From Octopus sinensis (lineage: Eukaryota), in contig NC_042998.1 of assembly GCF_006345805.1 (NCBI RefSeq), positions 23,126,001 to 23,190,000 on the forward strand: a stretch of DNA of 64,000 nucleotides. Direction: 5' to 3'. Within the stretch, counting starts at the first letter, position 1, and each line of letters begins with the position of its first letter. A program made the translations under genes and the position numbers. Positions 3,709 to 54,496 of the stretch are shown piece after piece. The notes under the pieces were generated by a model. The model made no database searches. It worked only from the letters and a program-made list of their open reading frames with translations, and was not told the DNA's origin.

Positions 3709-3714
3709 TTTATT
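3709..3714 (-). terminator. Candidate polyadenylation signal of CFAP46
   Basis: AATAAA on the minus strand about 15 nt after the stop codon; proximity is the only support. Confidence 0.3.
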
Positions 3715-3729
3715 GTTCTTTTCCATTTT

Positions 3730-6700
3730 TTAAGTCTGTGTCACAAATAAATTTGGTAGTCCATAGCACACCATGTTAAACCAGTTAGGTCTTACTTCTT
3801 TGTCATCAAGTTGTGATAGGGACTTTATAGGACTGACAGATGTAGAACTAGCTGTTGCAGCTAATTTCGCATCTTTTTTCTTGTCAGCTACAGTATTTTT
3901 TTTACCAGATATTTTATCTTTGTTAACATAGTTTTCTGTGCTACGTTTTTCCTCCATCTTCAAAAATGGTACCTGAATATGTCGAAGTGTTTCCCCTGTA
4001 GAATACCCATCAGACAGCAAACATTTCATGGCTGTCTTCATATGCTTTATGTTCTGGTTGAGTTGGCATGACCATTGATTACCCATGATGCAATGTACTC
4101 CTGCTAGACTAAGCAGTAATGCGACTGAAACTGGATTTTCCAAAGATAAAACATCGTCTGATTTTGAAGCATCATGAAGAGAAAGACGCCTAAAGCTTGA
4201 ATAATTTTCACTTAAATCAAACTGACAGACCAACAGGCATTTTGAAATGTTAAAAGCAGGAATTTTTACTGGATTTAAATAAGATGTTATTTTGTAAGGA
4301 GCAAGGAAAATGAAAGATCCACTTTCATTTAGATATGTTTCCCATTCTCCACTGCTTGCATTTCGAATATCTCCACTAAGTCCAATCCATTGGGATGTAT
4401 AAGATTGTTCATATTCAGCTAAGAGAGATTTAAAAATCTTACAGAGATCATATTCTTCAGGTTCATTAAATTCATAATTGACATCTACCATGTATTTGAA
4501 TGAATCTGTAATGATAGATTGACCCCATGGTGGCATTACATGATCGACAAGCTCTCTCTTCCGTTTCTTGCCAGTTTCTTTATTTACTGGTATACGGGTT
4601 GGTAGTGGTGGAGGCTGTTGCTGTTGTTTTTTGTCTTTCTTCTTTTTGTCTTTAGTTTCCTCAACGACTTCCTCTTGGTGGAATCTATGATAAAATAATT
4701 GCAAAGAAATGTCTCGTGACACTGATATTATATTTTCAAATTCACGAAATACACTCAAAGATTCCAGAGGAAGTTCAAGTAAGTCTGAATCAGCTAAAAT
4801 AATAATACAACCATTCTCCGAACTTTCTTTAAAAGCGGTGCTTGAATATGTTGGTGCAAAAGTGTGTTGCAAAGCTGTTCGCAGTGGCTGAAGTACAGCA
4901 GCAAAATAATCTTCCATTAAGGCAACAATTTCTTCAAATTTTTCCTGCATCCACTCTTCATCATTCTCAATCACAAAACTTTCTGATATAGCTGAATCAC
5001 AAGGTTCAAACTTTAAAGTATCAAGCATGTTTTTATAGTCAGACTGATTTTTTATTTGGAATTCTTTTTTGAGCAATGCTCGCCTGACATCTTTTTTATA
5101 AAGCTTTAACATGTTTAGAAGCTGGTGTAGTTTATCGGGATTAACTCTGAATTTTGCCAGAGAAGATCGTTTTAATAAACTTTGCGTTGTACTTACCGTT
5201 GGTTGTTTAGGGGCCGCTGCACTTTTAATTGATTTGTACTTCTCTAGGAGACTATAAAATATAAAATTTTTGTCAGGTGAATGCTGTAGAACTATAAAGT
5301 TGAAGTTGGAAGGGAATTCCTTTGCTATATCAAAATGATTTGTTAAAATCATTGTACTTTTCCAAGCCTGCCATTCTGTCTCCAATGAATTTGTTACAGA
5401 AGAATACGTATCAGTGCAGATGAAGTTTTTCTCAGCATAATTATTTAACATGTGTCTTCTTTGATGCAGAAGTGCTGCCAAACGACAACTGTAAGGGTTT
5501 GGTTGGCTGATCCCGAGTAATTTCTTTAAATGACAAGATGCCTGACAACTTTGATACAAAGCAAGGAAATGAGATGCAGCAATAACATCAAATTGGCCAA
5601 TAGACTTCAAAAGTTCATATGAAGCCTGCATAATTATATTTGTTTGTTTAAGTTGAAAAGCAGTATTTAAAGCTTGAGCTAAGCATTCAGCTGCTTGAGC
5701 AAAATAACAAAAGGAAATGTCCTCCTTCCATTTAATTTCTTTAATTTTCTTGGATAAATTTGGAATTTGATTTAAGTGATTAAAAAATGGATTTTTTCCT
5801 TCTTTGCTTTCATCAGATTCTGTATTTTCAGTATCTGGTGTCTCTTTATCTGGCACTATATCAAACAGTGACCATAACAGAGAGGGATTTGCTTGTTTTA
5901 AGAATGACAAATTGAGCAAACATTTGCCAATGATAAGCAAACTTCTAGATTTAATCCACAGTATTGTTCTAGCAAGACTATGTGCTGAAGTTGCTTGGGA
6001 CAGAATTTCATTAGCAATCCACTGCTTGCTTGTTGTCCATTCTTTCTCAGTTTCCAAATACTCGGGAGATTTGTTGATAAACTCCTCTTCTAGTTTTATC
6101 CTTTCAATATCATATTGATGCTTCTGTATTTTTTCAATTTCATGATTGGTTTGGATTGTTTGAATTTCAACCATAACTTCAGCACAACTTCTCTGCAAAT
6201 TAGACAATTCTCGATGAATAGGTAAGCTTAAATTAAAATCTTTAGGAAGTATCATCATTATATCATTAAATATAGCTCGAGCATGTTCTATGGCTTGATT
6301 AAAGACCTTTACAGAATGTAGATAATATGACTGCATACTGTTTGTGTTGTTTGTGGTTGACAGAGCAATTTCATGTAGTAATTTGGCATGGTTGTGCATG
6401 ACTTTGACAGCAGCTTTTGTAAACTTATGCTTGAGAAGAAATTCAGTTGAAATGTCAAAATAATTCAGTGGTGACTGAAACACTTCTTGTAGAGAAGCCG
6501 AAGGAAGGTCATTATATCGGCTCATATAGTATTTAATTTGAACTTCACCAAGTTTTGCTTGAATTAAAGCAATTGTATAATGATAACTGAGAGCTTGGTT
6601 TGGTCTGGTCAAAGATAACTTTTCAAATTCTTTAATGATTCTTTGTAGAAACTCTTCAACAAATTCATATCCATTTTTAGGAAAAGTTTGAAGAGCAGCA

Positions 6701-9700
6701 TCAGTTTTCAACATTACTATTTCATACCAATATTCCATATCACCAACCATAATTTCTTCAGCTTTCATACATAAATCAAATGCATCTTTGTATTGAGCCT
6801 CAACAAAAGCAAGTTTAGCTTTTAAAAAGCATAATTTTCCTTGGTAGAATATATCTTTGAAACCTACAGCAAACTTATATGCCTCAATTAAGTATTTCCT
6901 GGCAAGCTGGTAATGTGTTTGCTCGATCAATGCTTCAGCAGTCTTTGTCCAAATTTGGTAGACAAAAGTGTCTTGAAAATAATGCCCTAAATGGCATTTA
7001 TGAAGTAGTTTTTCTTTTTCTGCTTCCGATGAAATGTTTGGTTTAATGCAATAGTTATTCCTTTCTTGAACGTATTCATAAAATTTCTCTCTTATTTCAA
7101 TCAACTCATTAGGAGCAATACCAGACACCTGATTGATGACGTTTTCATGGAAGGAAGAACACTGTGGCAAATTGAGTTCGGCACATATTTCCATTCTTTT
7201 ACAATGAGTATAAAGAACGAAGGATTTAGAATGTGCTACAAATGAGGCTATGGTATGGTTCAAAGCTAACACCGGTAAAGTTAAGTGGTGAAACCCAATA
7301 TTTTGAAGATTAGTTACCAATTTATCAAAGTAATACAAGCTTATCATTGGATCAGGGAAGGATTTTTCATTAATTCCTGTAGTCTCTAAACTTTGATGGG
7401 TAAAAATTTCTTCTAAATCACATGGTACTTCAAACACAGCCCATTCTTCTGGAGTTAGAGTAGAAACATTGGTGCTTAAGAATTTCTTTTTATTCTTTTC
7501 TTTTGTTGGAGATATACAGTTTTCGTTTTTCTCTTTCTTGTCTTTTCCCTTTTGTTTTGATTGAAAATCAGATTTGTTTGAGACTCCAGAGTCTTTATTG
7601 GTAAGTGTATTGTTCTTCGGGATTTCGAAGTAAAAGCTTAATGCAGCAGCCATGCACACTTGCCACAGCCTTATTGTAAATGAGTAAGCCAAGAGAGAAT
7701 ATTTTTCATAAAAAGGAGATGCAGGAGTGTAAATTGCGCATAAAAGGACATAGCTTTTGATCAAATAATTCAGTTGTTTCACATTGTTCATTCTTCCTGT
7801 AACTGCAGTACAGTCTTGAAGTGGAACTCCAATAATGATTTCTTTCTCCTGAGGAACATAAAACTGAAAGTCCATCTGCACAACATTTTCATTAATGTTG
7901 GAATTAGGAAGATTTTCAGTGTCTTGAAGAATAGTGTCTTGAGGAATAGTGTCTAATTGTAAAGCACTAACCCTTGGTGTTTTATCTCCTGGTTTTTCTC
8001 CGTCTATTTCAGGAGTCATGCACATAAGAATATCTATAGCCCATTCTATTTGATCCACAACAATTTGTTCAGGCATTTGGTATGTATAAAGCCACTCACT
8101 GAATTCAAGCAGATAATGAAATTTCTGCCAATTGTATTCTTCACTTGAGAGACTTTCAATTGCTTTTTGATATGCAATACACTGTTCTGATAATTTATTG
8201 CTGTGTAAAGCTATGTCTCGCCACATCACTGCAACAAAATCTTCTTTCTCATCTCGAAATCTTTGGAGATCCATTAACATGTTTTCCCCTAGTTTTGCTT
8301 TGACCATAATTCTTCGTCTGAATAACTGAATTTTATGAAAACTGTGTGGCAGGTCAGCTATAGCAGTGTTGAGGATTTTAATAACCGTTTTCCAGTCATT
8401 GCTGTCTTCGTAGCTTTCACATAAGACAATATATAAAGAGACCTGGAGCTTCTGGTCATCATCATCAGCATTAATCAGAACAGGGTCATTCTCCCAATTT
8501 CTCCCAATGTAGCCATACAATGTGATTCGATTAACATCAGGCACATAGGAATTGGTTTTTTCAATACTGTTTAACTCTGTGATTTTGTTTGTGACTTTGG
8601 ATATATAGGAAAGAATTTCTTGAAGAGACGCTTTCAGAGATTTTCTTTCGGAGCTAATATTTATCAAAGGTAGAATTGTATTCCAATAATTTCTGGCAGC
8701 TTTCATCAAAATCTGATAATTATGTGATGGAATGGAAAACTCTGCAGCTTTTATAAAATTATTTATAGTTTCCCACCGATCAGTTTGCCCTTCCATATTT
8801 TCGGTCATACTTTGACCCATCAAAAGAAACAAATAACTAACTTTTTCTTCCATGTAACCATTATTTATGCCACTTCCAGTCTTCTCTTTTGCACAAGCAA
8901 CAGATATTTCAGTCAAATATGAATCTGTTACTGCTTTTGCAACTTTTATCACAAGCTCATAATTTTTATAATTATAGAGAATTTCAGCTAATTGAGTACA
9001 AAGCTGTAGTTTAAGCAAATTATCTCTCCAGAGATGTTTCAGTACTGTGGCCACTAAGTTTGGCAATGGCAATAGGTCTTTGAATTCCAGAACCCCATTT
9101 TTTGTATGTGTATACATTTCTATATCGACAATAATTTGTGATAATTGTTTCTCAGGATCATCATCTTTAATTGAATTCCTATTAATCTGCTGTTGTGACA
9201 TTTGCTTAGCTATGACCCAAGTTTTTAACAATGAAGCTTTCATAGGTAAAGGTATGGAAGAAATTTGCTTTTTTTTATTGGTAATATCAATAGCATATTC
9301 ACAAACCTCTATGGCTCTTTTTAGATCAGGTAAAGCTTGAGGTGGAATTAACACCAGTGGAGGTTTTGATTGATTTTTTGACACAGATTTTTCTGGAGAT
9401 GCATAAAGTCGAGTTGGTGATTCATTATTTATATCTGGAATTGAAGGCATCCATGGCATCATAAGTCCTGTAGCCAAATTTATACAGATATTTATAAGTA
9501 AGATAATAAATTCACTATAATCAACTTTTTGCATACCTTCCAAAATAGTTGAAAAACAACCAACAATTTCAGATTGACGATTTTGCTCAATAATATGGAG
9601 GTTGTAATTCCAAAGATAAGTAGCAGCATTACCAACAATGTGGCTGTCATTCAGGTTGTATCCAAGAATAAGACCTCGAAGAAAACTAGAACTAATTTTG

Positions 9701-11982
9701 GAATTCATTTGCTGAATCCACTGGCAGTATATTTGCCAGTCTTTGTCTTCAGCTGGATCGGCTGCTTCGTAATTTTTACCATGTTTGCTATAATCTTGAG
9801 GATAAACTGGCAAATCATTTAGTTTTACATTTTCTTGGTAAAGCAAGTTTAAACAAGCTTCTCCTTGAATAAAGTTGATCTCTGCTAAAACACGAACATG
9901 TTCCCGGTCACTGAGGGACAATTTATCACCCGTACCTTTTTTCTTTTTGGAATATAAAATTTCGTCAATATTCTCATCGGATTTCAATGCACTGTCAACA
10001 GAACTGCATTCTGTAGCAGTAACACTAACATCTTTGTATGCTGATAGCCATCTATTGTCATCATAAAGAAGACAAAACATAGCTGCTGTACGGCATACAT
10101 CCCAAGCTCCATGCTTCCGAGCAACCTTTGATAAATCTGCCCAAAGATGCATCCGAATATAATCACATCTGTCTCCAATTCTAAGTAAATGACCATCAAT
10201 TTTTTTAATATTAGCATCATACCTTTGAACACGTTCAACAAGCTGATCTGTCGTATTTGGCGAAAGCTTGACCTTTTCATAAAACAAACTTTCACTATCA
10301 AGAACTGTTTGGAATGCATCTGGTGACAATGTGATTCCTGCTTTTATAAGAAGGGCCCTCATACCTTCCTTTGTTCCAAGTGATTTTACCTCTCGAGCCT
10401 GTTCAATGATCTTTCCAGCAATATCCTCTGGATTGTCAGGGTTGAAATACATCTCTGATAGTAATGTCAAGCGGTTCAATTTCAAACTCAGTTGATTGTG
10501 ATACACTTTTGAACCATCCAAAGCAATAGCTTTTTTTAAGTGGCTTATGGCAATTTTTATATGCTCCTTTTCCTCACACAAAGCTAATTCCCGATGAACC
10601 TGGCACCGAAGTTGAATAAATAGACTCTGAATGTCTTCAAGTGCCTGTGCAACCAATGTTAATGGTTTACATAAATGAGAACGTAAATTTGACTGCAATA
10701 ATGGAAGAGAAAGATTCCACAGAGTGACACATCCACACTGAACAGAATGAGCATCATGCTGTTGCTTAGCTATGATAATGTTTTCTTCACAAAGTTTTAT
10801 TGCTTTTAATCGAATTTTAACTGATTTCCTGCTATAGGATTCTTGGTGGGCACCAAGTAATTTTACCATTATTTCACTTTCTGCAAACTTAAACTGAGTG
10901 TAAAACTCTTTCTTATAATTGGAAGATTTCATAGCTGCTTGAATACACTTTTGTGCAAATGGTACTAAATTATGCTTTAGACACAGACGTGTCAACTCAA
11001 GTAATAAGTATTGTCGTTCTAAATTGTCTTCTGAAAGAGGTCGAGGTCTATGTACCGTCAGTTCCCTAGGAGACTTTTTCTTGCCTTCACGAGGAGACGC
11101 ATTAGCGTGAACTGACTCTTCAACATACCCAAAGTTATCAGTACTTAGAGTTGCTATGTTAAGCTGCACCATTACTTTATATATTTCTCTGCCGATTTCT
11201 TTAGTTTCAGAAGTGTAATTCAACTTCATTATAGAGTAAAAAGCATGCAGCTCAGGCGAATTTTTAATTTGTCCTTGGCTCATAACGGAATCAACCAGTT
11301 GATAACGAACAATAAGTTCAAATAGTTTTTTAAAGAAAGTTATAGCATATTTTTTAACAAAACCAATTGCTGTTTTAGCAATTTCAATAGCTTCAGATTT
11401 CTTGCCAGTTTTTAAATACATTTCAATAAGCGTTACGGACAATATTGCTTTCCAGTTATAGTTAATGTCGGGCAGATCATTAAGAGCTTTGACAATAACA
11501 TATAAAGTGTTTACGACGTAATTATAGAAACCGGGACGCAAAAATGGATGGCATAACCTCCAATAAAGTATTGAAGCGTTATAGATTTCACTGTGCAAAG
11601 CGGGGTTCTTAACGGCTAAGTTGATTGCTCTCGTGATATGTTGCCCCGCTTTTTCTAAATGTGTAGTATCAAAAATATTCGTAGGTGCCGATAACTGCGC
11701 CATATATAAATATGCCACACATCTATTAGTGTCAGTTGCAACTGCTCTCGTAAAAAAGAGATTGAGGCATTCCTCTGCAATATCATAAGCAGCACACCTA
11801 ATAGCCAAATCGGAGCATTGTATTAAAATGTCGGTTGGTGTTGCATGTGGAAGATCTGTTGTAAACTGTAAGTGATCCATTTGCAAAATCATATCAAAGG
11901 CTTTCCGAATGTATTTTTGACATTCTTCTACGTCGTTACAATTCGCTACATAATCCATCAAATATTTTACTTCTATATCCAT
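3730..11982 (-). CDS. CFAP46: Cilia- and flagella-associated protein 46 (TTC40), single coding exon, 2750 aa
   Basis: Uninterrupted ORF. Motifs recognised from vertebrate CFAP46: YNASILYWRLCHPFLRPG, CVTLWNLSLPLLQSNLRSHLCKPL, LRCQVHRELA, LLIKAGITLSPDAFQTVLDSE, LWADLSKVARKHGAWDVCRTAAMFCLLYD. Length is close to the ~2700-aa vertebrate protein. No SINEs or microsatellites within 8.2 kb. Confidence 0.95.
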   Translation of the reverse strand: MDIEVKYLMDYVANCNDVEECQKYIRKAFDMILQMDHLQFTTDLPHATPTDILIQCSDLAIRCAAYDIAEECLNLFFTRAVATDTNRCVAYLYMAQLSAPTNIFDTTHLEKAGQHITRAINLAVKNPALHSEIYNASILYWRLCHPFLRPGFYNYVVNTLYVIVKALNDLPDINYNWKAILSVTLIEMYLKTGKKSEAIEIAKTAIGFVKKYAITFFKKLFELIVRYQLVDSVMSQGQIKNSPELHAFYSIMKLNYTSETKEIGREIYKVMVQLNIATLSTDNFGYVEESVHANASPREGKKKSPRELTVHRPRPLSEDNLERQYLLLELTRLCLKHNLVPFAQKCIQAAMKSSNYKKEFYTQFKFAESEIMVKLLGAHQESYSRKSVKIRLKAIKLCEENIIIAKQQHDAHSVQCGCVTLWNLSLPLLQSNLRSHLCKPLTLVAQALEDIQSLFIQLRCQVHRELALCEEKEHIKIAISHLKKAIALDGSKVYHNQLSLKLNRLTLLSEMYFNPDNPEDIAGKIIEQAREVKSLGTKEGMRALLIKAGITLSPDAFQTVLDSESLFYEKVKLSPNTTDQLVERVQRYDANIKKIDGHLLRIGDRCDYIRMHLWADLSKVARKHGAWDVCRTAAMFCLLYDDNRWLSAYKDVSVTATECSSVDSALKSDENIDEILYSKKKKGTGDKLSLSDREHVRVLAEINFIQGEACLNLLYQENVKLNDLPVYPQDYSKHGKNYEAADPAEDKDWQIYCQWIQQMNSKISSSFLRGLILGYNLNDSHIVGNAATYLWNYNLHIIEQNRQSEIVGCFSTILEGMQKVDYSEFIILLINICINLATGLMMPWMPSIPDINNESPTRLYASPEKSVSKNQSKPPLVLIPPQALPDLKRAIEVCEYAIDITNKKKQISSIPLPMKASLLKTWVIAKQMSQQQINRNSIKDDDPEKQLSQIIVDIEMYTHTKNGVLEFKDLLPLPNLVATVLKHLWRDNLLKLQLCTQLAEILYNYKNYELVIKVAKAVTDSYLTEISVACAKEKTGSGINNGYMEEKVSYLFLLMGQSMTENMEGQTDRWETINNFIKAAEFSIPSHNYQILMKAARNYWNTILPLINISSERKSLKASLQEILSYISKVTNKITELNSIEKTNSYVPDVNRITLYGYIGRNWENDPVLINADDDDQKLQVSLYIVLCESYEDSNDWKTVIKILNTAIADLPHSFHKIQLFRRRIMVKAKLGENMLMDLQRFRDEKEDFVAVMWRDIALHSNKLSEQCIAYQKAIESLSSEEYNWQKFHYLLEFSEWLYTYQMPEQIVVDQIEWAIDILMCMTPEIDGEKPGDKTPRVSALQLDTIPQDTILQDTENLPNSNINENVVQMDFQFYVPQEKEIIIGVPLQDCTAVTGRMNNVKQLNYLIKSYVLLCAIYTPASPFYEKYSLLAYSFTIRLWQVCMAAALSFYFEIPKNNTLTNKDSGVSNKSDFQSKQKGKDKKEKNENCISPTKEKNKKKFLSTNVSTLTPEEWAVFEVPCDLEEIFTHQSLETTGINEKSFPDPMISLYYFDKLVTNLQNIGFHHLTLPVLALNHTIASFVAHSKSFVLYTHCKRMEICAELNLPQCSSFHENVINQVSGIAPNELIEIREKFYEYVQERNNYCIKPNISSEAEKEKLLHKCHLGHYFQDTFVYQIWTKTAEALIEQTHYQLARKYLIEAYKFAVGFKDIFYQGKLCFLKAKLAFVEAQYKDAFDLCMKAEEIMVGDMEYWYEIVMLKTDAALQTFPKNGYEFVEEFLQRIIKEFEKLSLTRPNQALSYHYTIALIQAKLGEVQIKYYMSRYNDLPSASLQEVFQSPLNYFDISTEFLLKHKFTKAAVKVMHNHAKLLHEIALSTTNNTNSMQSYYLHSVKVFNQAIEHARAIFNDIMMILPKDFNLSLPIHRELSNLQRSCAEVMVEIQTIQTNHEIEKIQKHQYDIERIKLEEEFINKSPEYLETEKEWTTSKQWIANEILSQATSAHSLARTILWIKSRSLLIIGKCLLNLSFLKQANPSLLWSLFDIVPDKETPDTENTESDESKEGKNPFFNHLNQIPNLSKKIKEIKWKEDISFCYFAQAAECLAQALNTAFQLKQTNIIMQASYELLKSIGQFDVIAASHFLALYQSCQASCHLKKLLGISQPNPYSCRLAALLHQRRHMLNNYAEKNFICTDTYSSVTNSLETEWQAWKSTMILTNHFDIAKEFPSNFNFIVLQHSPDKNFIFYSLLEKYKSIKSAAAPKQPTVSTTQSLLKRSSLAKFRVNPDKLHQLLNMLKLYKKDVRRALLKKEFQIKNQSDYKNMLDTLKFEPCDSAISESFVIENDEEWMQEKFEEIVALMEDYFAAVLQPLRTALQHTFAPTYSSTAFKESSENGCIIILADSDLLELPLESLSVFREFENIISVSRDISLQLFYHRFHQEEVVEETKDKKKKDKKQQQQPPPLPTRIPVNKETGKKRKRELVDHVMPPWGQSIITDSFKYMVDVNYEFNEPEEYDLCKIFKSLLAEYEQSYTSQWIGLSGDIRNASSGEWETYLNESGSFIFLAPYKITSYLNPVKIPAFNISKCLLVCQFDLSENYSSFRRLSLHDASKSDDVLSLENPVSVALLLSLAGVHCIMGNQWSCQLNQNIKHMKTAMKCLLSDGYSTGETLRHIQVPFLKMEEKRSTENYVNKDKISGKKNTVADKKKDAKLAATASSTSVSPIKSLSQLDDKEVRPNWFNMVCYGLPNLFVTQT

Positions 11983-12207
11983 TTTGATTGTTTCTAAATT
12001 TCATATGACATTGAATTAATAGTAAAAATAAAAACAAAATAAAATTAAATTAATCACCTACTTTTGCTAAACTTTAAATGAAATGAAAAAAAAAATATAT
12101 CAGCTTTCCAACAACTTCATACTCAGACACAAATAATTTTAAGTTTCGATAATCTGACTTGTTGAGCGTCGAATACTTTGTTTACATGTAAGGGCAGCTA
12201 ACTCTCT

Positions 12208-12220
12208 GTTGCTATGTAAC
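12208..12220 (-). promoter_or_regulatory. RFX X-box in the CFAP46 promoter
   Basis: Minus strand GTTACA-T-AGCAAC matches the RFX pattern GTNRCN-(N0-3)-RGYAAC, about 230 bp upstream of the ATG of a motile-cilium gene. Confidence 0.7.
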
Positions 12221-12242: not shown

Positions 12243-12614
12243 CCTGAGTAAAGCCGATGTGAAAATAAAAACTATGAAATAAAATCTGGAATTCATTCAT
12301 AGTGTCGCGAAAAGTATAAAATAAACATCTAAATCTCCTTATTGACCAAACTTTATAAGATGACGATGAATGTAAATAAATGGAAAGATAATGATATAAT
12401 CAGAACAGGTAAAATATGTGGCAATAACCTGATATATAAATCCATTTGAAGTATTCTATTTAAATTCAAATCGTAAAGAACCAGAAGAAATTATGGTTTC
12501 AAATTTTAGTACAAGGCCAGCAATTTCGAGGACAGAATAAGTCGATTACATCTACCTCAGTGTTCAACCGGTATTTATTTTATCGATCCCGAAAGGATGA
12601 AAGGTAAAATCGAC

Positions 12615-13269
12615 TTCGGCGATTTCCGTGACCACATGTTGTCTTGTCACTTGTCAGTTGGGAAGAGAAAGCTAATGGGTGGTGCGTGCGTACTTGTTGC
12701 TCTCTCTGTGTGTGTGCTTGTTCTTCTGTATATGTGTGTGTCTGGTCTGTTTTGTTTTTTTTTGTATTTATATGTTGTGGAATGTAGAAATAACACACAG
12801 AGGAACAAACATGCAGGCGATCTTTCGTCTTTAGTAGACCTTTCCGTCGATTTCCGTAAAAAAATTTTTTTTTTACATATGGGCTTGCGGGAACTTTTGA
12901 AGTAATGAGAGCGAAAGAGACTAAGAGAAAGCGATTGCATGACGAGGGAAGTTCTTTTGAAGTTACCGTGCATGGGAGCATTGATGTACATGTGTGTGTG
13001 TGTTTGATGGGATGTGGGAGACAGACAGTATGTTGTGTAAGTGAAGTGCTTCTGTTAGTGTGTGTGAAGAGACAGAGGTAACTTCAAAAGAACTTCCCTC
13101 GTCATACAATCGCTTTCTCTTAGTCTCTTTCGCTCTCATTACTTCAAAAGTTCCCGCAAGCCCATATGTAAAAAAAAAAAATCTTTTACGGAAATCGACG
13201 GAAAGGTCTACTAGAGACGAAAGATTGCCAACAAGCACACACAAACACACACGCGCACAAACAAGAACA

Positions 13270-13310
<41 letters not shown>

Positions 13311-13396
13311 GAACAAGCACGCACGCACAACCCCATTAGCTTTCTCTTCCCAGCTGACAATCGACAAGACAACATGTGGTCACGGAAATCACCGAA
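12615..13396. mobile_element. Foldback/long-TIR element; arms 12615-12967 and 13077-13396, spacer about 110 bp
   Basis: Arms are reverse complements over more than 300 bp (atttccgtgaccacatgttgtcttgtc...gggaagagaaagctaatggg and tagtagacctttccgtcgatttccgtaaaa...gggcttgcgggaacttttgaagtaatgagagcgaaagagactaagagaaagcgattg). The left end truncates a SINE at about 12620. Confidence 0.8.
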
Positions 13397-13671
13397 TTCA
13401 ATGTTTACATTATTTCGAGTCAAAACGGAAGATCGCCTGCTCAGCATGCCCCAGCTTCTGCCCGCTCGCCGCCCTAGAAGTAGAAGAAATATTGCCGCAG
13501 TGCTTTCTCTGCTGTTCCATCCATTCCATATCTCCGCTGCTCTAAGTAGCTTTCTAATAAAATACTAAACGTTTAATAGGGATTTATTACCTGGTAGAAC
13601 TGGCGACGTCATTTAATTAGTTGCCCACCACATCACTTTTCTCACTCACATACGAAGGACAGAGATCCTTA

Positions 13672-14487: not shown

Positions 14488-15221
14488 TACGTGTAGAATA
14501 CAAACGTGCAAAAATTTTCTTAAAATTCCCAAAAATTTTTTAAAGCAGAATTCCACCAGTACTTCATTTGTTTACAGTTAGGGTTTAGGGTTTATAGTTG
14601 ACAACACATACAGTCACGCACAAAATGACAGTTTCCAAATCTTGTTTCCTGATTGGTTAAAAATTATCAAATTCTAAACCTCTGTAACTTTTCAAAAATA
14701 TTTTTTCTGGAAAAAGTTAAGGATCTTTTCGCTTTGACCGGCAGATTTTAAAATAATTTCTTTGTAACTAAAAACTTTTAAACTTCGTATACTGGTAGAA
14801 TGTGTTTATAAAACATCTTTTTCTCTTGGCTTTCTTGAGAAAATTCTGTAGTTTGTAAGCTATTTGTTCTTTAATTTCTTGCATTTCTGCAATTTCAACC
14901 AATCAATGACGTCTATTGAGGTGAATACAATATCTCCGGATCTTTGTCAACAACAATTATTTGGTCAAAAATTATATTGGATTTATATGTTGAAGACTAG
15001 CTTTAGTCTTTAGGAGAGTCTAGAGTTTGGAACATTTTTAAGCATAAGTCTATGGAATGCTTGTAAAGGTTCAAGTTAGCAGTGTGTCTATATCGGAATG
15101 TTGATGTGTTTGACTGTGTGTTATGAAGGGCAAAGGAGAAAGGTTTTAAGTTTAAATGTTGAGTTACATAGCTCTAGGATTGATGAAATGTTTGTTGAGT
15201 CTGTATATTTTTATGTGGTGT

Positions 15222-15700
15222 GAAAGAAAGAAAGTTGTAAATATAGTCGAGCTAACGGTTCCTCACGAAGATAATATGGACGCCGCTCGAGCTCGAAAAT
15301 TAAACCGTTATGAAAACCTCCTCGAGGAATGTGAAGACGCAGGCTGGAAAGCGGAACATTTTCCTATCGAAGTCGGATGTAGAGGGTTTGTAGGACACAG
15401 CGTGAGACGACTGTTGTTATCGTTAGGCCTAACTCATCGTAAAGTCAATACCACCATGACTGATATCCAAACTACAGTGGAAAACGCTAGCCACTGGATT
15501 TGGTTAAAAGGAGACGATGAGCGATGGCTAGAAGTATATTGAGTTCTTCATAACCAGCTGATCTAGCAAGCGGGGCCTCATATCAGTGAGGGGGGCCGGT
15601 GCGCATTGATGCCGTCGAGAGGTAGGCCCCGAAACGGCACGCATTCTCTCCTGATGACCCCATACACTTGCTAGCTTCCGATATACGGAGTTTTTAACTG
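15222..15700 (+). mobile_element. 3' end of a restriction-like-endonuclease non-LTR retrotransposon (HERO/NeSL-like): ORF C-terminus plus 3' UTR
   Basis: Translation VELTVPHEDNMDAARARKLNRYENLLEECEDAGWKAEHFPIEVGCRGF...ASHWIWLK, stop at 15540-15542, matches the RLE C-terminal pattern (ELTVP.E...K..Y..L...GW....EVG.RGF...WIW.K); a GC-rich structured 3' UTR follows. Confidence 0.8.
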
Positions 15701-21094: not shown

Positions 21095-21589
21095 CCATCA
21101 CAATCCATGAGTCAGCAGAATAGCAGGGTCACAGTCAATGCATTGGTATGATGTTAACCCTTTGATATGGAGGTTTACTTGCTAGGCAAGAGATTTGAAC
21201 TGGCACTCTATCAGTTATGACGATGAGGGCTCCAGCTGATCCGACCAATGGAACAGCCTGCTCATGAAATTAATGTGCAAGTGGCTGAGTACTCCACAGA
21301 GATGTGTGCCCTTAATGTAGTTCTCTGGGGGTGGAGGATTTAGAATGGCACAGAATGTGGGAAGGCTGGCCGCTATAGTAGAAGACACTTGCCTAAGGTA
21401 CCACGCAGTGGGACTGAACCCAGAACTATGTGGTTGATAAGCAAGCTATTTACCACACAGTCACAATAATTCTCCTTTTACAATTTTGATACCGAGCTGC
21501 GAATATCTATTGTCAATTAGATTAATTCAAATTTTGAAATAATTACTATAGCTCTTATTCATGGTGTTTACACAGCTTTATCAGGAACT

Positions 21590-21966
21590 ATCAAAGAAGC
21601 TTGAGAGGCAGTTGGATGGAACTTACACTCGCCTCCTTATGAGAGCTCAAAATCTCTTGTGGAAGCGTCATCCAATCAAAGTACAAATATATGGGAAACT
21701 ACCACCTGTATCATCTTTTGTGAAAGGTAGAAGAGTTCAGTTTGCTGGACATTGTTGTAGAGCAGAAAACGAAGTAATTTCTACTCTTCTCCTCCGGAAG
21801 CCATCTACTTGCGATACCAGAGGGTGCACACTCTCCTACTCTGATGTAATCTCCAGGGATACAGGCATCCAGCAACAGGACCTCCGTAATGCTATGATGG
21901 ACCGTGAAGTCTGGCGTAACATAGTAAATTCCATTGTCTTGACCACGGTCAAACAATGATGATGAT
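21590..21966 (+). mobile_element. RTE-like LINE 3' end
   Basis: LDGTYTRLLMRAQNLLWKRHP...RRVQFAGHCCRAENEVISTLLL...DLRNAMMDREVWR resembles an RTE/RTEX ORF2 C-terminus; followed by a (TGA)n tail. Confidence 0.8.
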
Positions 21967-24224: not shown

Positions 24225-24638
24225 TTAAGGCGGCGAGCTGGCAGAATCGTTAGCACACCGGGCAAAATGCTTAGCGGTATTTCGTCTACCGCTATGTTCT
24301 GAGTTCAAATTCCGCCATGGTCGACTTTGCCTTTCATCCTTTCGGGGTCAATTAAATAAGTACCAGTGACGCACTGGGGTCGATATAATCAACTTAATCT
24401 GTTTATCTGTCCTTGTTTGTCCTCTCTGTGTTTAGCCTCTTGTGGGTAGTAAAGAAATAGGTATTTCATCTGTCATTACGTTCTATTCCGCTGAGGTTGA
24501 TTTTGCCTTTCATCCTTTCGGGGTTGATAAATTAAGTATCAGTTACACACTGGAGTCGATGTAATCGACTTAATCCCTTTGTCTGTCCTTGTTTGTCTCC
24601 TCTACATTTAGCCCCTTGTGGGCAATAAAGAAATAAGT
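24225..24638 (+). mobile_element. tRNA-derived dimeric SINE, family 'A', inserted into a family-B SINE with an 11-bp TSD
   Basis: Head aaggcggcgagctggcagaatcgttagc...ttctgagttcaaattcc and two tandem ~190-bp units; gtgaggctaca is duplicated at 24214-24224 and 24639-24649. Confidence 0.85.
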
Positions 24639-30905: not shown

Positions 30906-31190
30906 CTGTAATAGAAATAAAAATCAAAAGAAATATGTTAAAGATATTTCAGAAGCAGATTTCAACAACAGAAGCACATTATTTATTCATTTAGATTTTG
31001 TGCGTTTTAAAGATGACAAAATATAATGTTCTTTTAGTTCATTTCTACATGATACACACAATACGCACACACATTTATATTACATATAGACACACACACA
31101 CATTTACATGTGGTTCCACATTAAAGTGCCTATGGAGTGCCTTGTAGAAGCACCTGTACAGTGTCAAATACAAGCGCCTGTGTGATACCA

Positions 31191-32031
31191 TATAAAAAGC
31201 GCCCATGCAGCACCACATAAAAAGCGCCAGAACAACATGATGTAAAGGCATGCATGTGGTGCCACATAAAAGTGTCTGTGCGACACTACATAAAAAGCGC
31301 CCATGCAGCACCACATAAAAAGTGCCAGAACAACATGATGTAAAGGCATGCATGTGGTGCCACATAAAAGTGTCTGTGCGACACTACATAAAAAGCGCCC
31401 ATGCAGCACCACATAAAAAGCGCCAGAACAACATGATGTAAAGGCATGCATGTGGTGCCACATAAAAGTGTCTGTGCGACACTACATAAAAAGCGCCCAT
31501 GCAGCACCACATAAAAAGTGCCAGAACAACATGATGTAAAGGCATGCATGTGGTGCCACATAAAAGTGTCTGTGCGACACTACATAAAAAGCGCCCATGC
31601 AGCACCACATAAAAAGCACCAGAACAACATGATGTAAAGGCATGCATGTGGTGCCACATAAAAGTGTCTGTGCGACACTACATAAAAAGCGCCCATGCAG
31701 CACCACATAAAAAGCGCCAGAACGACATGATGTAAAGGCATGCATGTGGTGCCACATAAAAGTGTCTGTGCGACACTACATAAAAAGCGCCCATGCAGCA
31801 CCACATAAAAAGCACCAGAACAACATGATGTAAAGGCATGCATGTGGTGCCACATAAAAGTGTCTGTGCGACACTACATAAAAAGCGCCCATGCAGCACC
31901 ACATAAAAAGCGCCAGAACGACATGATGTAAAGGCATGCATGTGGTGCCACATAAAAGTGTCTGTGAGACACAACATAAAAAAGCACCAGAATCACATGA
32001 TGTAAAGGCACCCAAATGGTGCCACATAAAA
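31191..32031. repeat. 98-bp tandem array, 8 full copies plus a degenerate partial one
   Basis: Unit cataaaaagcgcccatgcagcaccacataaaaagcgccagaacaacatgatgtaaaggcatgcatgtggtgccacataaaagtgtctgtgcgacacta starts at 31191, 31289, 31387 ... 31877. Confidence 0.95.
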
Positions 32032-35662: not shown

Positions 35663-36080
35663 AAAAGGCAGTGATCTGGCAGAAACGTTAGCACGCCATG
35701 TGAAATGCGTAGCCGTATTTCGTCTTCCGTTACGTTCTGAGTTCAAATTCCACCGAGGTTAACTTTGCCTTTCATCCTTTCGGGTCGATTGAATAATTAC
35801 CAGTTACGCACTGGGGTCGATATCATCGACTTAATCCGTTTGTCTGTCCTTGTTTGTCCCCTCTGTGTTTAGCCCCTTGTTGGTAGTAAAGAAATAGGTA
35901 TTTTGTCTGCCGCTACATTCTGAGTTCAAATTCCACCGAGGTTAACTTTGCCTTTCATCCTTTTGGGGTTGATTAAATAAGTACCAGTTACACACTGGGG
36001 GTCGATGTAATCGACTTAATCCATTTGTCTGTCCTTGTTTGTCCCCTCTATGTTTAGCCCCTTGTGGGCAATAAAGAATT
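35663..36080 (+). mobile_element. Dimeric SINE family 'A', inside a probable piggyBac-like MITE (about 35564-36221)
   Basis: Same structure as 24225-24638; the flanks form a degenerate CCCTCTC...AAAAGAG-TTAA element. Confidence 0.75.
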
Positions 36081-40186: not shown

Positions 40187-40300
40187 CTGTGCTTTTGCAG
40201 CTTTCCACCTGTCGAAACCAGAACGCAGTAATATGGCAAAATCCCCAACTTCATGAGGGATTTCATGTACCAGAATTGCAAATGTTGTTATGATTCCAAC
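40187..40300 (-). CDS. SLC39A13: SLC39A13 exon: [38 protein letters not shown]
   Basis: CAG acceptor, GTGAGT donor, 114 nt, phase 0-0; carries the LIV-1 subfamily HEXPHEXGD motif and the ZIP13-like GFDRW.AAK.Q. Confidence 0.96.
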
Positions 40301-52597: not shown

Positions 52598-52687
52598 CTT
52601 ATTGCATACCAGAAAACTTCCACCAACAGCAAGCCCATGAGTGAAATTATCTATAATGTTGGCAAGAAGATTTAAATAACCACTAAT
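52598..52687 (-). CDS. SLC39A13: SLC39A13 exon: ISGYLNLLANIIDNFTHGLAVGGSFLVCNK
   Basis: CAG acceptor, GTAAAC donor, 90 nt, phase 0-0; near-identical to ZIP13 VSGYLNLLANTIDNFTHGLAV. Confidence 0.96.
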
Positions 52688-53390: not shown

Positions 53391-53423
53391 GAGTTTATCT
53401 GTGTGTGTGTGTATGTATGTGTA

Positions 53424-53485
<62 letters not shown>

Positions 53486-53487
<2 letters not shown>

Positions 53488-54496
53488 GCAGAGAGCCACG
53501 ATCACAAATTATGCAGATGATACAAAAGTTTCACAAGTAATACAGAACCCTAAAGACACTATGCACCTGCAATGTGAGCTGGTCAAAATATACAAGTGGG
53601 CTGAAAAGAATAGCATGCAGTTCAATGCTGAAAAGTTTCAAGCTTTATGCTATCAGCATGCAAAACTAAATGCAATACCCAATAAATACACTGGACCTGG
53701 AGGGATTGCAATCCCAGAGGCACAATCAGTGCGAGACCTGGGTATTTATATGAGTAATGATGCAACCTTTCATGTGCATGTTGCTAAATTGGCAATGAAA
53801 TGTAGGTGGCTGACCGGATGGATTCTTAGAGCTTTTAGAACAAGAGACCAGGAAACCATGATGGTCCTCACTTGTTCTAAGCCACTTTGACTATTGCTCT
53901 CAGCTATGGTCACCAACCAGTGTCAAATTAATCACAGAACTTGAGGCGATCCAACGAGGCTACATGAAGAAGATAGCCTCTGTGCAGCATATAAGCTATT
54001 GGGAAAGACTCAAGAGATTAAGATTCTATTCCTTAGAGCGTAGGCAAGAAAGATATGCCATAATATACATCTGGAAGATCCTGGAAGGACTTGTCCCAAA
54101 CTTTGGCATCGAGAGTTACACAAATACTAGAACTGGGCGCCACTGCATAGTGTCAAGGACTCCAAATTTACAATCAAGATGTAGGACAAGATACTGTGAT
54201 AGCCTGGGCTTCAGAGGTCCACAGCTCTTCAATATCCTCTCAAAGGACCTGAGAGACCTACATGGGGTGGATGCAGATGTCTTTAAAATAAAGCTGGACC
54301 TCTTCCTGTCAGGTGTCCCAGATGAACCAACTTCACAGCAGGAGGTGCAGATGAGGGCAGCTGCATCAAACTCTCTCATGCACCAAATGTCAATTGCTAA
54401 AAAGCATTCGTGAAGTAAAATCATGTAGCAACACCGAATGGCGGTGTCCCAGCATGGCCACAGCCCGTGAGCTGAAACTAGATGAAATGAAATGAA

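Follow-up and report, generated by a model that had tools for sequence, protein, structure and literature searches.

How a gene that is split into dozens of exons in its relatives came to be a single coding exon in an octopus is the question raised by a 64,000-nucleotide stretch of the Octopus sinensis genome (assembly GCF_006345805.1, contig NC_042998.1, positions 23,126,001 to 23,190,000; hereafter the window). On its minus strand, one open reading frame (ORF) runs without interruption from ATG to TAA over 2750 codons, or 8.25 kb, and encodes CFAP46. The answer that we consider probable is that cephalopod CFAP46 is an orphan retrogene, which arose by retrogene replacement: a reverse-transcribed copy of the spliced message settled at a new locus and took over from its parent.

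The ORF is full-length CFAP46. The next-longest ORF in the window has 169 codons, and the chance of 2750 stop-free codons, computed at the 34.7% GC of the ORF itself, is ∼1e-89. The N-terminal tetratricopeptide repeat (TPR) domain of the family (Pfam PF25439, TPR_CFAP46_N) is recognized at residues 23–153 (E = 5.3e-12; 46.2 bits against a cutoff of 27 bits), and the protein strongly matches both mammalian CFAP46 in the solved structure 9ijj_A (E = 8e-293) and Chlamydomonas FAP46 in the solved structure 7n6g (E = 2e-19), both structures being of the central apparatus. Across Metazoa, CFAP46 proteins of molluscs, echinoderms, hemichordates and vertebrates align colinearly and with 100% query coverage. 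The NCBI annotation of the gene is also CFAP46, and on chromosome record CM016860.1 (GCA_006345805.1) the gene range equals the length of the coding sequence (CDS), which translates exactly to the annotated protein. The ORF scan, the domain and the structure matches thus bear out the initial annotation, which had read one unbroken 8,253-bp ORF as CFAP46. In other organisms CFAP46 (also TTC40 or FAP46) is a component of the central-apparatus C1d projection, and its loss leads to primary ciliary dyskinesia (PMC11651342); the gene has been lost in some birds (PMC10445033). The octopus protein would be expected to act in the same projection and in ciliary or sperm-flagellar motility.

In exon structure, unlike in protein architecture, the octopus gene departs from its family. 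The CFAP46 gene occupies 30 kb in Lottia and 100 kb in Haliotis; in the bivalve Sinanodonta it extends over 193 kb, and in the annelid Owenia over 71 kb. When the annotated proteins were threaded on genomic DNA, exact GT-AG junctions were placed at 38 sites in Lottia, 55 in Haliotis and 49 in Owenia. These define 75 distinct intron positions, 48 of them common to at least two species and 19 to all three; therefore, the ancestral molluscan CFAP46 had at least about 48–55 coding introns. None of the 75 mapped positions is occupied in the octopus CDS, so that, as in a retrogene, every parental intron is absent from the copied region. The comparison also disposes of a single exon that is ancient in all molluscs, under which the octopus gene would be nothing special, because the Lottia, Haliotis and Sinanodonta orthologs are multi-exonic and the mapped introns number at least 38–55.

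The single-exon structure is common to the octopods available. The O. bimaculoides ortholog (GCA_001194135.2) is 89% identical in amino acid sequence, and its range again equals its CDS (8232 bp for 2743 amino acids). Its downstream neighbor, as in O. sinensis, is a gene of the RrnaAD (rRNA adenine-dimethylase) family, and the repeat-bearing flanks of the two species are colinear for 10 kb on each side at 80–95% identity. The annotated protein from a third assembly, that of O. vulgaris, is 99.6% identical. A third octopod, represented by two Logan contigs (L011 and L012), has a protein of 82% identity; over 8,655 bp, 316 nucleotides of upstream sequence included, it aligns colinearly with the window at 88%. 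The Logan contigs used here come from runs SRR8281663, SRR9969974, SRR11869391/94, ERR12921337-40 and ERR12945498/500.

A more distant relative, to which we refer by its protein handle P0004, dates the event. P0004 is an uninterrupted ORF of 2758 codons, about 42–43% identical to octopus CFAP46, found on eight Logan contigs of 9–10 kb from different runs; our guess is that it comes from a distant cephalopod, probably a decapodiform. A (CA)n microsatellite and stretches of homopolymer lie in the 367–1230 nucleotides of upstream sequence on seven of the eight contigs, whose breaks coincide, and these seven look genomic. The eighth, L008, starts at −73, ends in an A-rich run and looks like a product of mRNA.

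At ancestral intron positions, we compared the exonic AG|G consensus (the protosplice site) between outgroups and cephalopods. The intron-bearing outgroups have AG at 61–65% of junctions and G at −1 at 73–80%, whereas the three octopods are near background at the homologous positions (AG 8–10% against 5%; G at −1 12–18% against 15%). P0004 is far under the intron-bearing level when all positions are counted (AG 21%, G at −1 28%) and is indistinguishable from the octopods at positions where the alignment is reliable (∼20% AG, 20–30% G at −1). The slight AG excess in P0004 (21% against a background of 6%, p = 0.002) was considered as a trace of retained introns and rejected, as the excess over octopods vanishes at the alignment-reliable sites; if its contigs were cDNA (complementary DNA), a minority of retained introns would still be conceivable. 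Because P0004 has the same uninterrupted ORF and an equally decayed junction consensus, the event is old, as the initial annotation had supposed, and the loss of introns appears to predate the split between the octopod and P0004 lineages, which share a long stem branch in a distance tree.

The second line of evidence is the genomic address. In Lottia and Haliotis, CFAP46 lies head-to-head with a gene bearing a ParcG domain, 0.6–1.1 kb away. This neighbor was at first a candidate for PACRG, an identification that homology searching overturned in favor of the PACRG-like gene PACRGL. The bivalve Sinanodonta and the nemertean Lineus (gap of 953 bp) show the same divergent order, Patella has consecutive locus tags for the two genes, and the contigs that carry them in Mytilus coruscus are equally long (1.46 Mb) and presumably one. 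In the annelid Owenia, CFAP46 is not paired with PACRGL. Because the nemertean shares the pair with gastropods and the bivalve, the arrangement is in all likelihood older than Mollusca and ancestral for cephalopods, and it resembles a bidirectional pair of ciliary genes with deep conservation.

In the octopus this pair is broken. PACRGL was not detected by tblastx or by tblastn at E ≤ 10 in the window, which extends 52 kb upstream of CFAP46 and 3.7 kb downstream, nor in the 28-kb O. bimaculoides locus or the distant-cephalopod contigs, under conditions in which control searches gave 1e-37 to 1e-61. Among the best 120 of 216 PACRGL homology matches there is no cephalopod, though many molluscs are present; in cephalopods the gene may have diverged or been lost, possibly along with the parental CFAP46 locus. 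The remaining outgroup neighbors of CFAP46 (HSP70, Sas10/Utp3, CCDC162, DUF3695 and others) do not match the octopus neighbors either, which are a ZIP transporter gene upstream and the RrnaAD gene downstream, and no ancestral neighbor was found within 52 kb upstream or 10 kb downstream of octopus CFAP46. The exon-number and flank comparison that had been proposed at the outset has this result: the outgroup genes are multi-exonic and, except in Owenia, PACRGL-linked, and the octopus gene is single-exon and unlinked. Judged against the ancestral state inferred from outgroups, its locus differs from the parental one, as that of a retrogene does, and the gene lacks the ancestral locus and neighbors that a gene stripped of its introns in place would keep. 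Octopus CFAP46 thus appears to occupy a new chromosomal address, between the ZIP transporter gene and the rRNA-methylase gene. As a separate observation, the Lottia HSP70 gene, 3′ of CFAP46 (L014, 41532–43451), is itself a single exon beside a 50-exon CFAP46, with a 639-amino acid product that fills its 1920 bp.

The initial annotation had left open whether such a gene is a retrogene or the outcome of reverse transcriptase-mediated intron loss in place. The break in the ancestral PACRGL-CFAP46 pair leads us to favor a retrogene whose parent was lost, and one retroposition event explains both the loss of at least 48 introns together and the change of address. The sequence of events would have been as follows. 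In the germ line of the common ancestor of octopods and P0004, a spliced, full-length message of CFAP46, longer than 8.3 kb, would have been reverse-transcribed, and the cDNA inserted at a new locus, which in the octopus lies between the ZIP-family and RrnaAD-family genes. The copy would then have gained expression, probably through an RFX/X-box-type element ∼240 nucleotides upstream and possibly with a recruited 5′ leader exon, and would have taken over from a PACRGL-linked parent of at least 50 exons that was later lost. It would have kept a full-length C1d protein under purifying selection, evolving much faster than those of other molluscs. The RNA intermediate, the loss of the parent, the use of the promoter and the function in cilia or sperm flagella are parts of this reading that we infer. 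When a gene loses all its introns, retroposition is considered the most parsimonious route (Ciomborowska 2013, PMC3548309).

The ratio of nonsynonymous to synonymous substitution rates (dN/dS) among octopods, a measurement suggested with the first reading of the locus, is 0.29–0.51, and the 8.2-kb frame is intact in four lineages, so octopus CFAP46 is under purifying selection. Three-taxon arithmetic gives a dN/dS of ∼0.6 on the O. sinensis branch and ∼0.4 on the O. bimaculoides branch, suggesting a higher value in the former; between octopods and P0004, synonymous divergence (dS) is not computable, neutral sites being saturated. Haliotis CFAP46 is 61–64% identical to that of Lottia and three bivalves, 56% to that of Lineus and 43% to that of Nematostella. 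Gastropod and bivalve proteins are 58–67% identical among themselves, whereas those of octopus and P0004 are only 35–38% identical to any mollusc, so cephalopod CFAP46 evolves much faster than its counterparts in other molluscs. The distance tree misplaces the cephalopod clade by long-branch attraction.

At the 5′ end, the absence of coding introns from the original reading holds for the conserved 2750-codon CDS and needs a reservation upstream of it, where a short leader exon and intron may exist. The O. vulgaris protein model (P0109) starts 11 amino acids earlier, with MTSQVLPETIK ahead of the conserved MDIEV. In the window, a candidate mini-exon joined to the large exon at position 11993 yields MTSPVLPETIKMDIEV, or MTSPVLPETIK-MDIEV, in agreement with the O. 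vulgaris annotation, and the ATG and GT donor of the mini-exon are kept in O. bimaculoides (Table 1). A short 5′ exon and a leader intron of ∼1.6 kb may therefore belong to CFAP46, and the putative intron would contain the X-box-like site described below. An inverted pair of SINE-like (short interspersed element-like) repeats lies inside the putative leader intron, and the stretch is ∼0.8 kb shorter in O. bimaculoides. Upstream of P0004, ATGTCGGCATG|GTAAGT was examined as a homolog of the mini-exon and dropped, since its order relative to the X-box differs. On contig L003 (∼1140–1160, or −87 to −71) it makes up a short upstream ORF, at the end of which stands a strong donor-like site, and the mRNA-like L008 begins inside it; it may be an upstream ORF, a tiny leader exon or chance.

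Between the mini-exon and the start codon lies GTTACATAGCAAC, which has one mismatch to the consensus of the X-box bound by RFX factors, GTNRCC N0-3 RGYAAC (aligned as GTNRCC-N-RGYAAC). It is the sole match in the window, on both strands, to the looser GTNRCNNRGYAAC, in which the final C of the left half is relaxed to N; matches to the X-box with at most one mismatch have a background of 0.2 per kb. The site is unchanged in O. bimaculoides and in the third octopod; in P0004 a variant, GTCACTTAGCAAC, lies at −121. It is suggestive of an RFX ciliary promoter element. A search of the 0.5–1.1 kb upstream of the CDS in Lottia, Haliotis and Owenia gave no X-box-like site, the true transcription starts of these genes being unmapped.

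Several observations weigh against retrogene replacement. Coleoid genomes are heavily rearranged, and a broken linkage could arise in them without retroposition. The loss of the parent is read from annotated proteomes, and PACRGL, which might mark the ancestral octopus locus, has no cephalopod representative among the best 120 of its 216 matches. The P0004 contigs may be either genomic or cDNA. The X-box-like site lies outside the likely P0004 transcript, and its presence beside a retrocopy would call for either a gain of the site or an aberrantly long transcript that carried it. No poly(A) remnant follows the AATAAA signal downstream of the stop codon, the nearest A14 lying ∼1.29 kb downstream beside a repeat, and no target-site duplication is evident by eye in the flanks, where no systematic search was made and the insert boundaries are undefined. 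The initial annotation had likewise seen neither mark, and their absence is expected because the event is so old. Finally, long templates are usually cut short at their 5′ end in target-primed reverse transcription (PMC5470649), which makes a full-length copy exceeding 8 kb rare a priori.

Intron loss in place is the strongest competitor, and we regard it as unlikely without being far-fetched. Here a full-length cDNA would have recombined with the original gene (reverse transcriptase-mediated gene conversion), and later chromosomal rearrangements in the cephalopod lineage would have split off PACRGL and supplied new neighbors. An X-box-like element near the 5′ end is easy to account for if the promoter was never left behind, a surviving 5′-most leader intron is what conversion by 3′-primed cDNA tends to spare, and coleoid genomes are known for an extensive loss of ancestral synteny. 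Octopus CFAP46 also resembles known cases in the precise removal of introns, the intact frame and the 5′-most intron that is possibly spared. However, classical in situ cDNA conversion, as in yeasts and some animals, removes a few adjacent, usually 3′-biased introns and keeps the locus, whereas octopus CFAP46 has lost every coding intron and lacks the ancestral neighbor. Two independent rare events would be required: a conversion tract longer than 8 kb, taking out at least 48 introns, and a break within a bidirectional promoter of ∼1 kb that is conserved from nemerteans to gastropods and a bivalve. Ancestral neighbors are retained on neither side, and the lack of an X-box-like site upstream of the Lottia, Haliotis and Owenia genes gives no sign that the element was inherited.

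We find it improbable that the window gene is an additional, possibly testis-specialized retrocopy, with a multi-exon parent unannotated or missed elsewhere in the genome. The copy count covers annotated proteins, and fast evolution with dN/dS values up to 0.5 is typical of specialized retrogenes. Yet searches of annotated proteins seeded with the octopus protein and P0004 found no second CFAP46 in O. sinensis, O. vulgaris or O. bimaculoides, each having one, and no second cephalopod cluster; the window gene is the one that NCBI calls CFAP46, and the contig and transcript evidence from the distant cephalopod is all of the intronless type. Even less credible is a stepwise history, in which roughly 50–60 introns were deleted over time, singly or a few together, wherever the gene then lay. 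The loss is ancient, and intermediates could have vanished without trace, but all mapped ancestral positions are empty while the ZIP neighbor keeps introns of at least 12 kb, complete loss is common to two deeply diverged cephalopod lineages, and no process is known to us that takes ∼50 introns singly out of one gene and leaves its neighbors untouched. An intronless gene produced by cDNA contamination or mis-assembly, the latter already raised in the initial annotation, has a negligible probability, because two independent chromosome-scale assemblies agree in structure and have homologous, repeat-bearing flanks that are colinear for 10 kb per side, and the O. vulgaris protein and independent Logan contigs of other species concur.

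Retrogene replacement, the reading that we prefer, is a known but rare route of gene restructuring and relocation, and together with the resulting orphan retrogenes it is reportedly treated by Krasnov (2005). To our knowledge, the documented cases concern genes of a few kilobases. There is precedent in amphioxus SYCP1 (PMC5803294), and retrogenes typically recruit a 5′ exon and a promoter at a later stage (PMC5470649; AmphiSYCP1, PMC5803294). Like AmphiSYCP1 and other orphan retrogenes, octopus CFAP46 has a single coding exon in several species, multi-exonic orthologs, an unrelated locus, and possibly non-coding exons at the 5′ end and a promoter that was recruited or co-opted once the copy had been inserted; it is also the sole copy, here as judged from annotated proteins. 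Unlike AmphiSYCP1, its coding exon measures 8.25 kb rather than ∼3.2 kb and replaces at least 48–55 coding introns, the broken linkage is the deeply conserved bidirectional PACRGL-CFAP46 pair, and the protein has accelerated afterwards. The mechanism is thus a known one, and what is unusual is the size, the number of introns, the depth of the broken linkage and the later acceleration. A literature search found no paper on intronless CFAP46 in cephalopods or on cephalopod retrocopies, and a record for the longest retrogene could not be documented from the literature.

More tentatively, and with less confidence than we place in retrogene replacement itself, a processed copy of more than 8.3 kb from a ∼55-exon gene may have replaced its parent in the cephalopod stem, ranking among the longest functional retrogenes and helping to dissolve bilaterian/lophotrochozoan microsynteny in cephalopods. 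If so, CFAP46 was released from co-regulation with PACRGL before a large acceleration of the protein, which may relate to a reduced use of motile cilia in cephalopods and a specialization towards sperm flagella. An 8.25-kb coding exon in place of at least 48–55 introns would stretch the known size range and would imply that the cephalopod ancestor possessed a germ-line reverse transcriptase of very high processivity. The locus would offer a datable example of a conserved bidirectional pair broken in a lineage known for genome reorganization, and a natural experiment on a structural axonemal protein that lost its introns and regulatory neighborhood and was retained, yet evolves faster. As a rare genomic change, intronless CFAP46 could serve as a phylogenetic marker for dating splits within Cephalopoda.

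Table 1. Features of the CFAP46 locus in window coordinates, with the outgroup gene pairs (coordinates of their own contigs) in the last line.
Feature	Position	Strand	Remarks
CFAP46 CDS, 2750 codons plus stop, one exon	3730..11982	-	start ATGGATATA, stop TAA, both verified
AATAAA polyadenylation signal	3709..3714	-	15 nt after stop; kept in third octopod contig L011
Leader of large exon, 11 nt, AAACAATCAAA	11983..11993	-	encodes ETIK of P0109
Candidate 3′ acceptor AG with T-rich tract before leader	AG at 11994-11995	-	from sequence
RFX X-box-like site GTTACATAGCAAC	12208..12220	-	238 nt 5′ of ATG
Candidate 5′ mini-exon, 22 nt, ATGACGTCGCCAGTTCTACCAG (MTSPVLP + G)	13591..13612	-	donor GTAATA at 13585-13590
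ZIP transporter exon, upstream neighbor	40187..40300	-	AG/GT borders
ZIP transporter exon, upstream neighbor, encoding NLLANIIDNFTHGLAVGGSF	52598..52687	-	AG/GT borders
PACRGL-CFAP46 pair loci	L014 6687-10001; L013 2475-10001; L016 1-11611; Sinanodonta locus		head-to-head

The upstream neighbor had been named SLC39A13, its last ∼190 codons being read as spread over 24 kb and five introns. One of these long introns is borne out: a motif search (motif DNFTHGLAVGGSF) located two clean exons on the CFAP46 strand with a 12.3-kb intron between them, and therefore the region is not intron-poor. The name stands at the level of the ZIP family (Pfam Zip, E = 6e-19), and a resemblance of motifs suggests that the gene may be SLC39A13.

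Other features of the window are repetitive. Two adjoining plus-strand ORFs of 161 and 149 amino acids (53405–54413) resemble the tail of a non-LTR (long terminal repeat) retrotransposon, the former with a weak RVT_1 match (E = 0.0012) that falls below the Pfam cutoff, and ORFs at 15156–15542 and 21561–21959, which have no Pfam match, resemble fragments of mobile elements. A tandem array at 31178–31982 consists of 8.2 copies of a 98-bp unit at 97% identity and yields a ladder of overlapping minus-strand ORFs of 91–99 amino acids that are almost certainly not genes. A SINE-like family with the core TTTGCCTTTCATCCTTTCGGGGTCGATAAAATAAGTACCAG recurs at 12580–13545, 24319–24635, 35715–36078 and elsewhere in the window.

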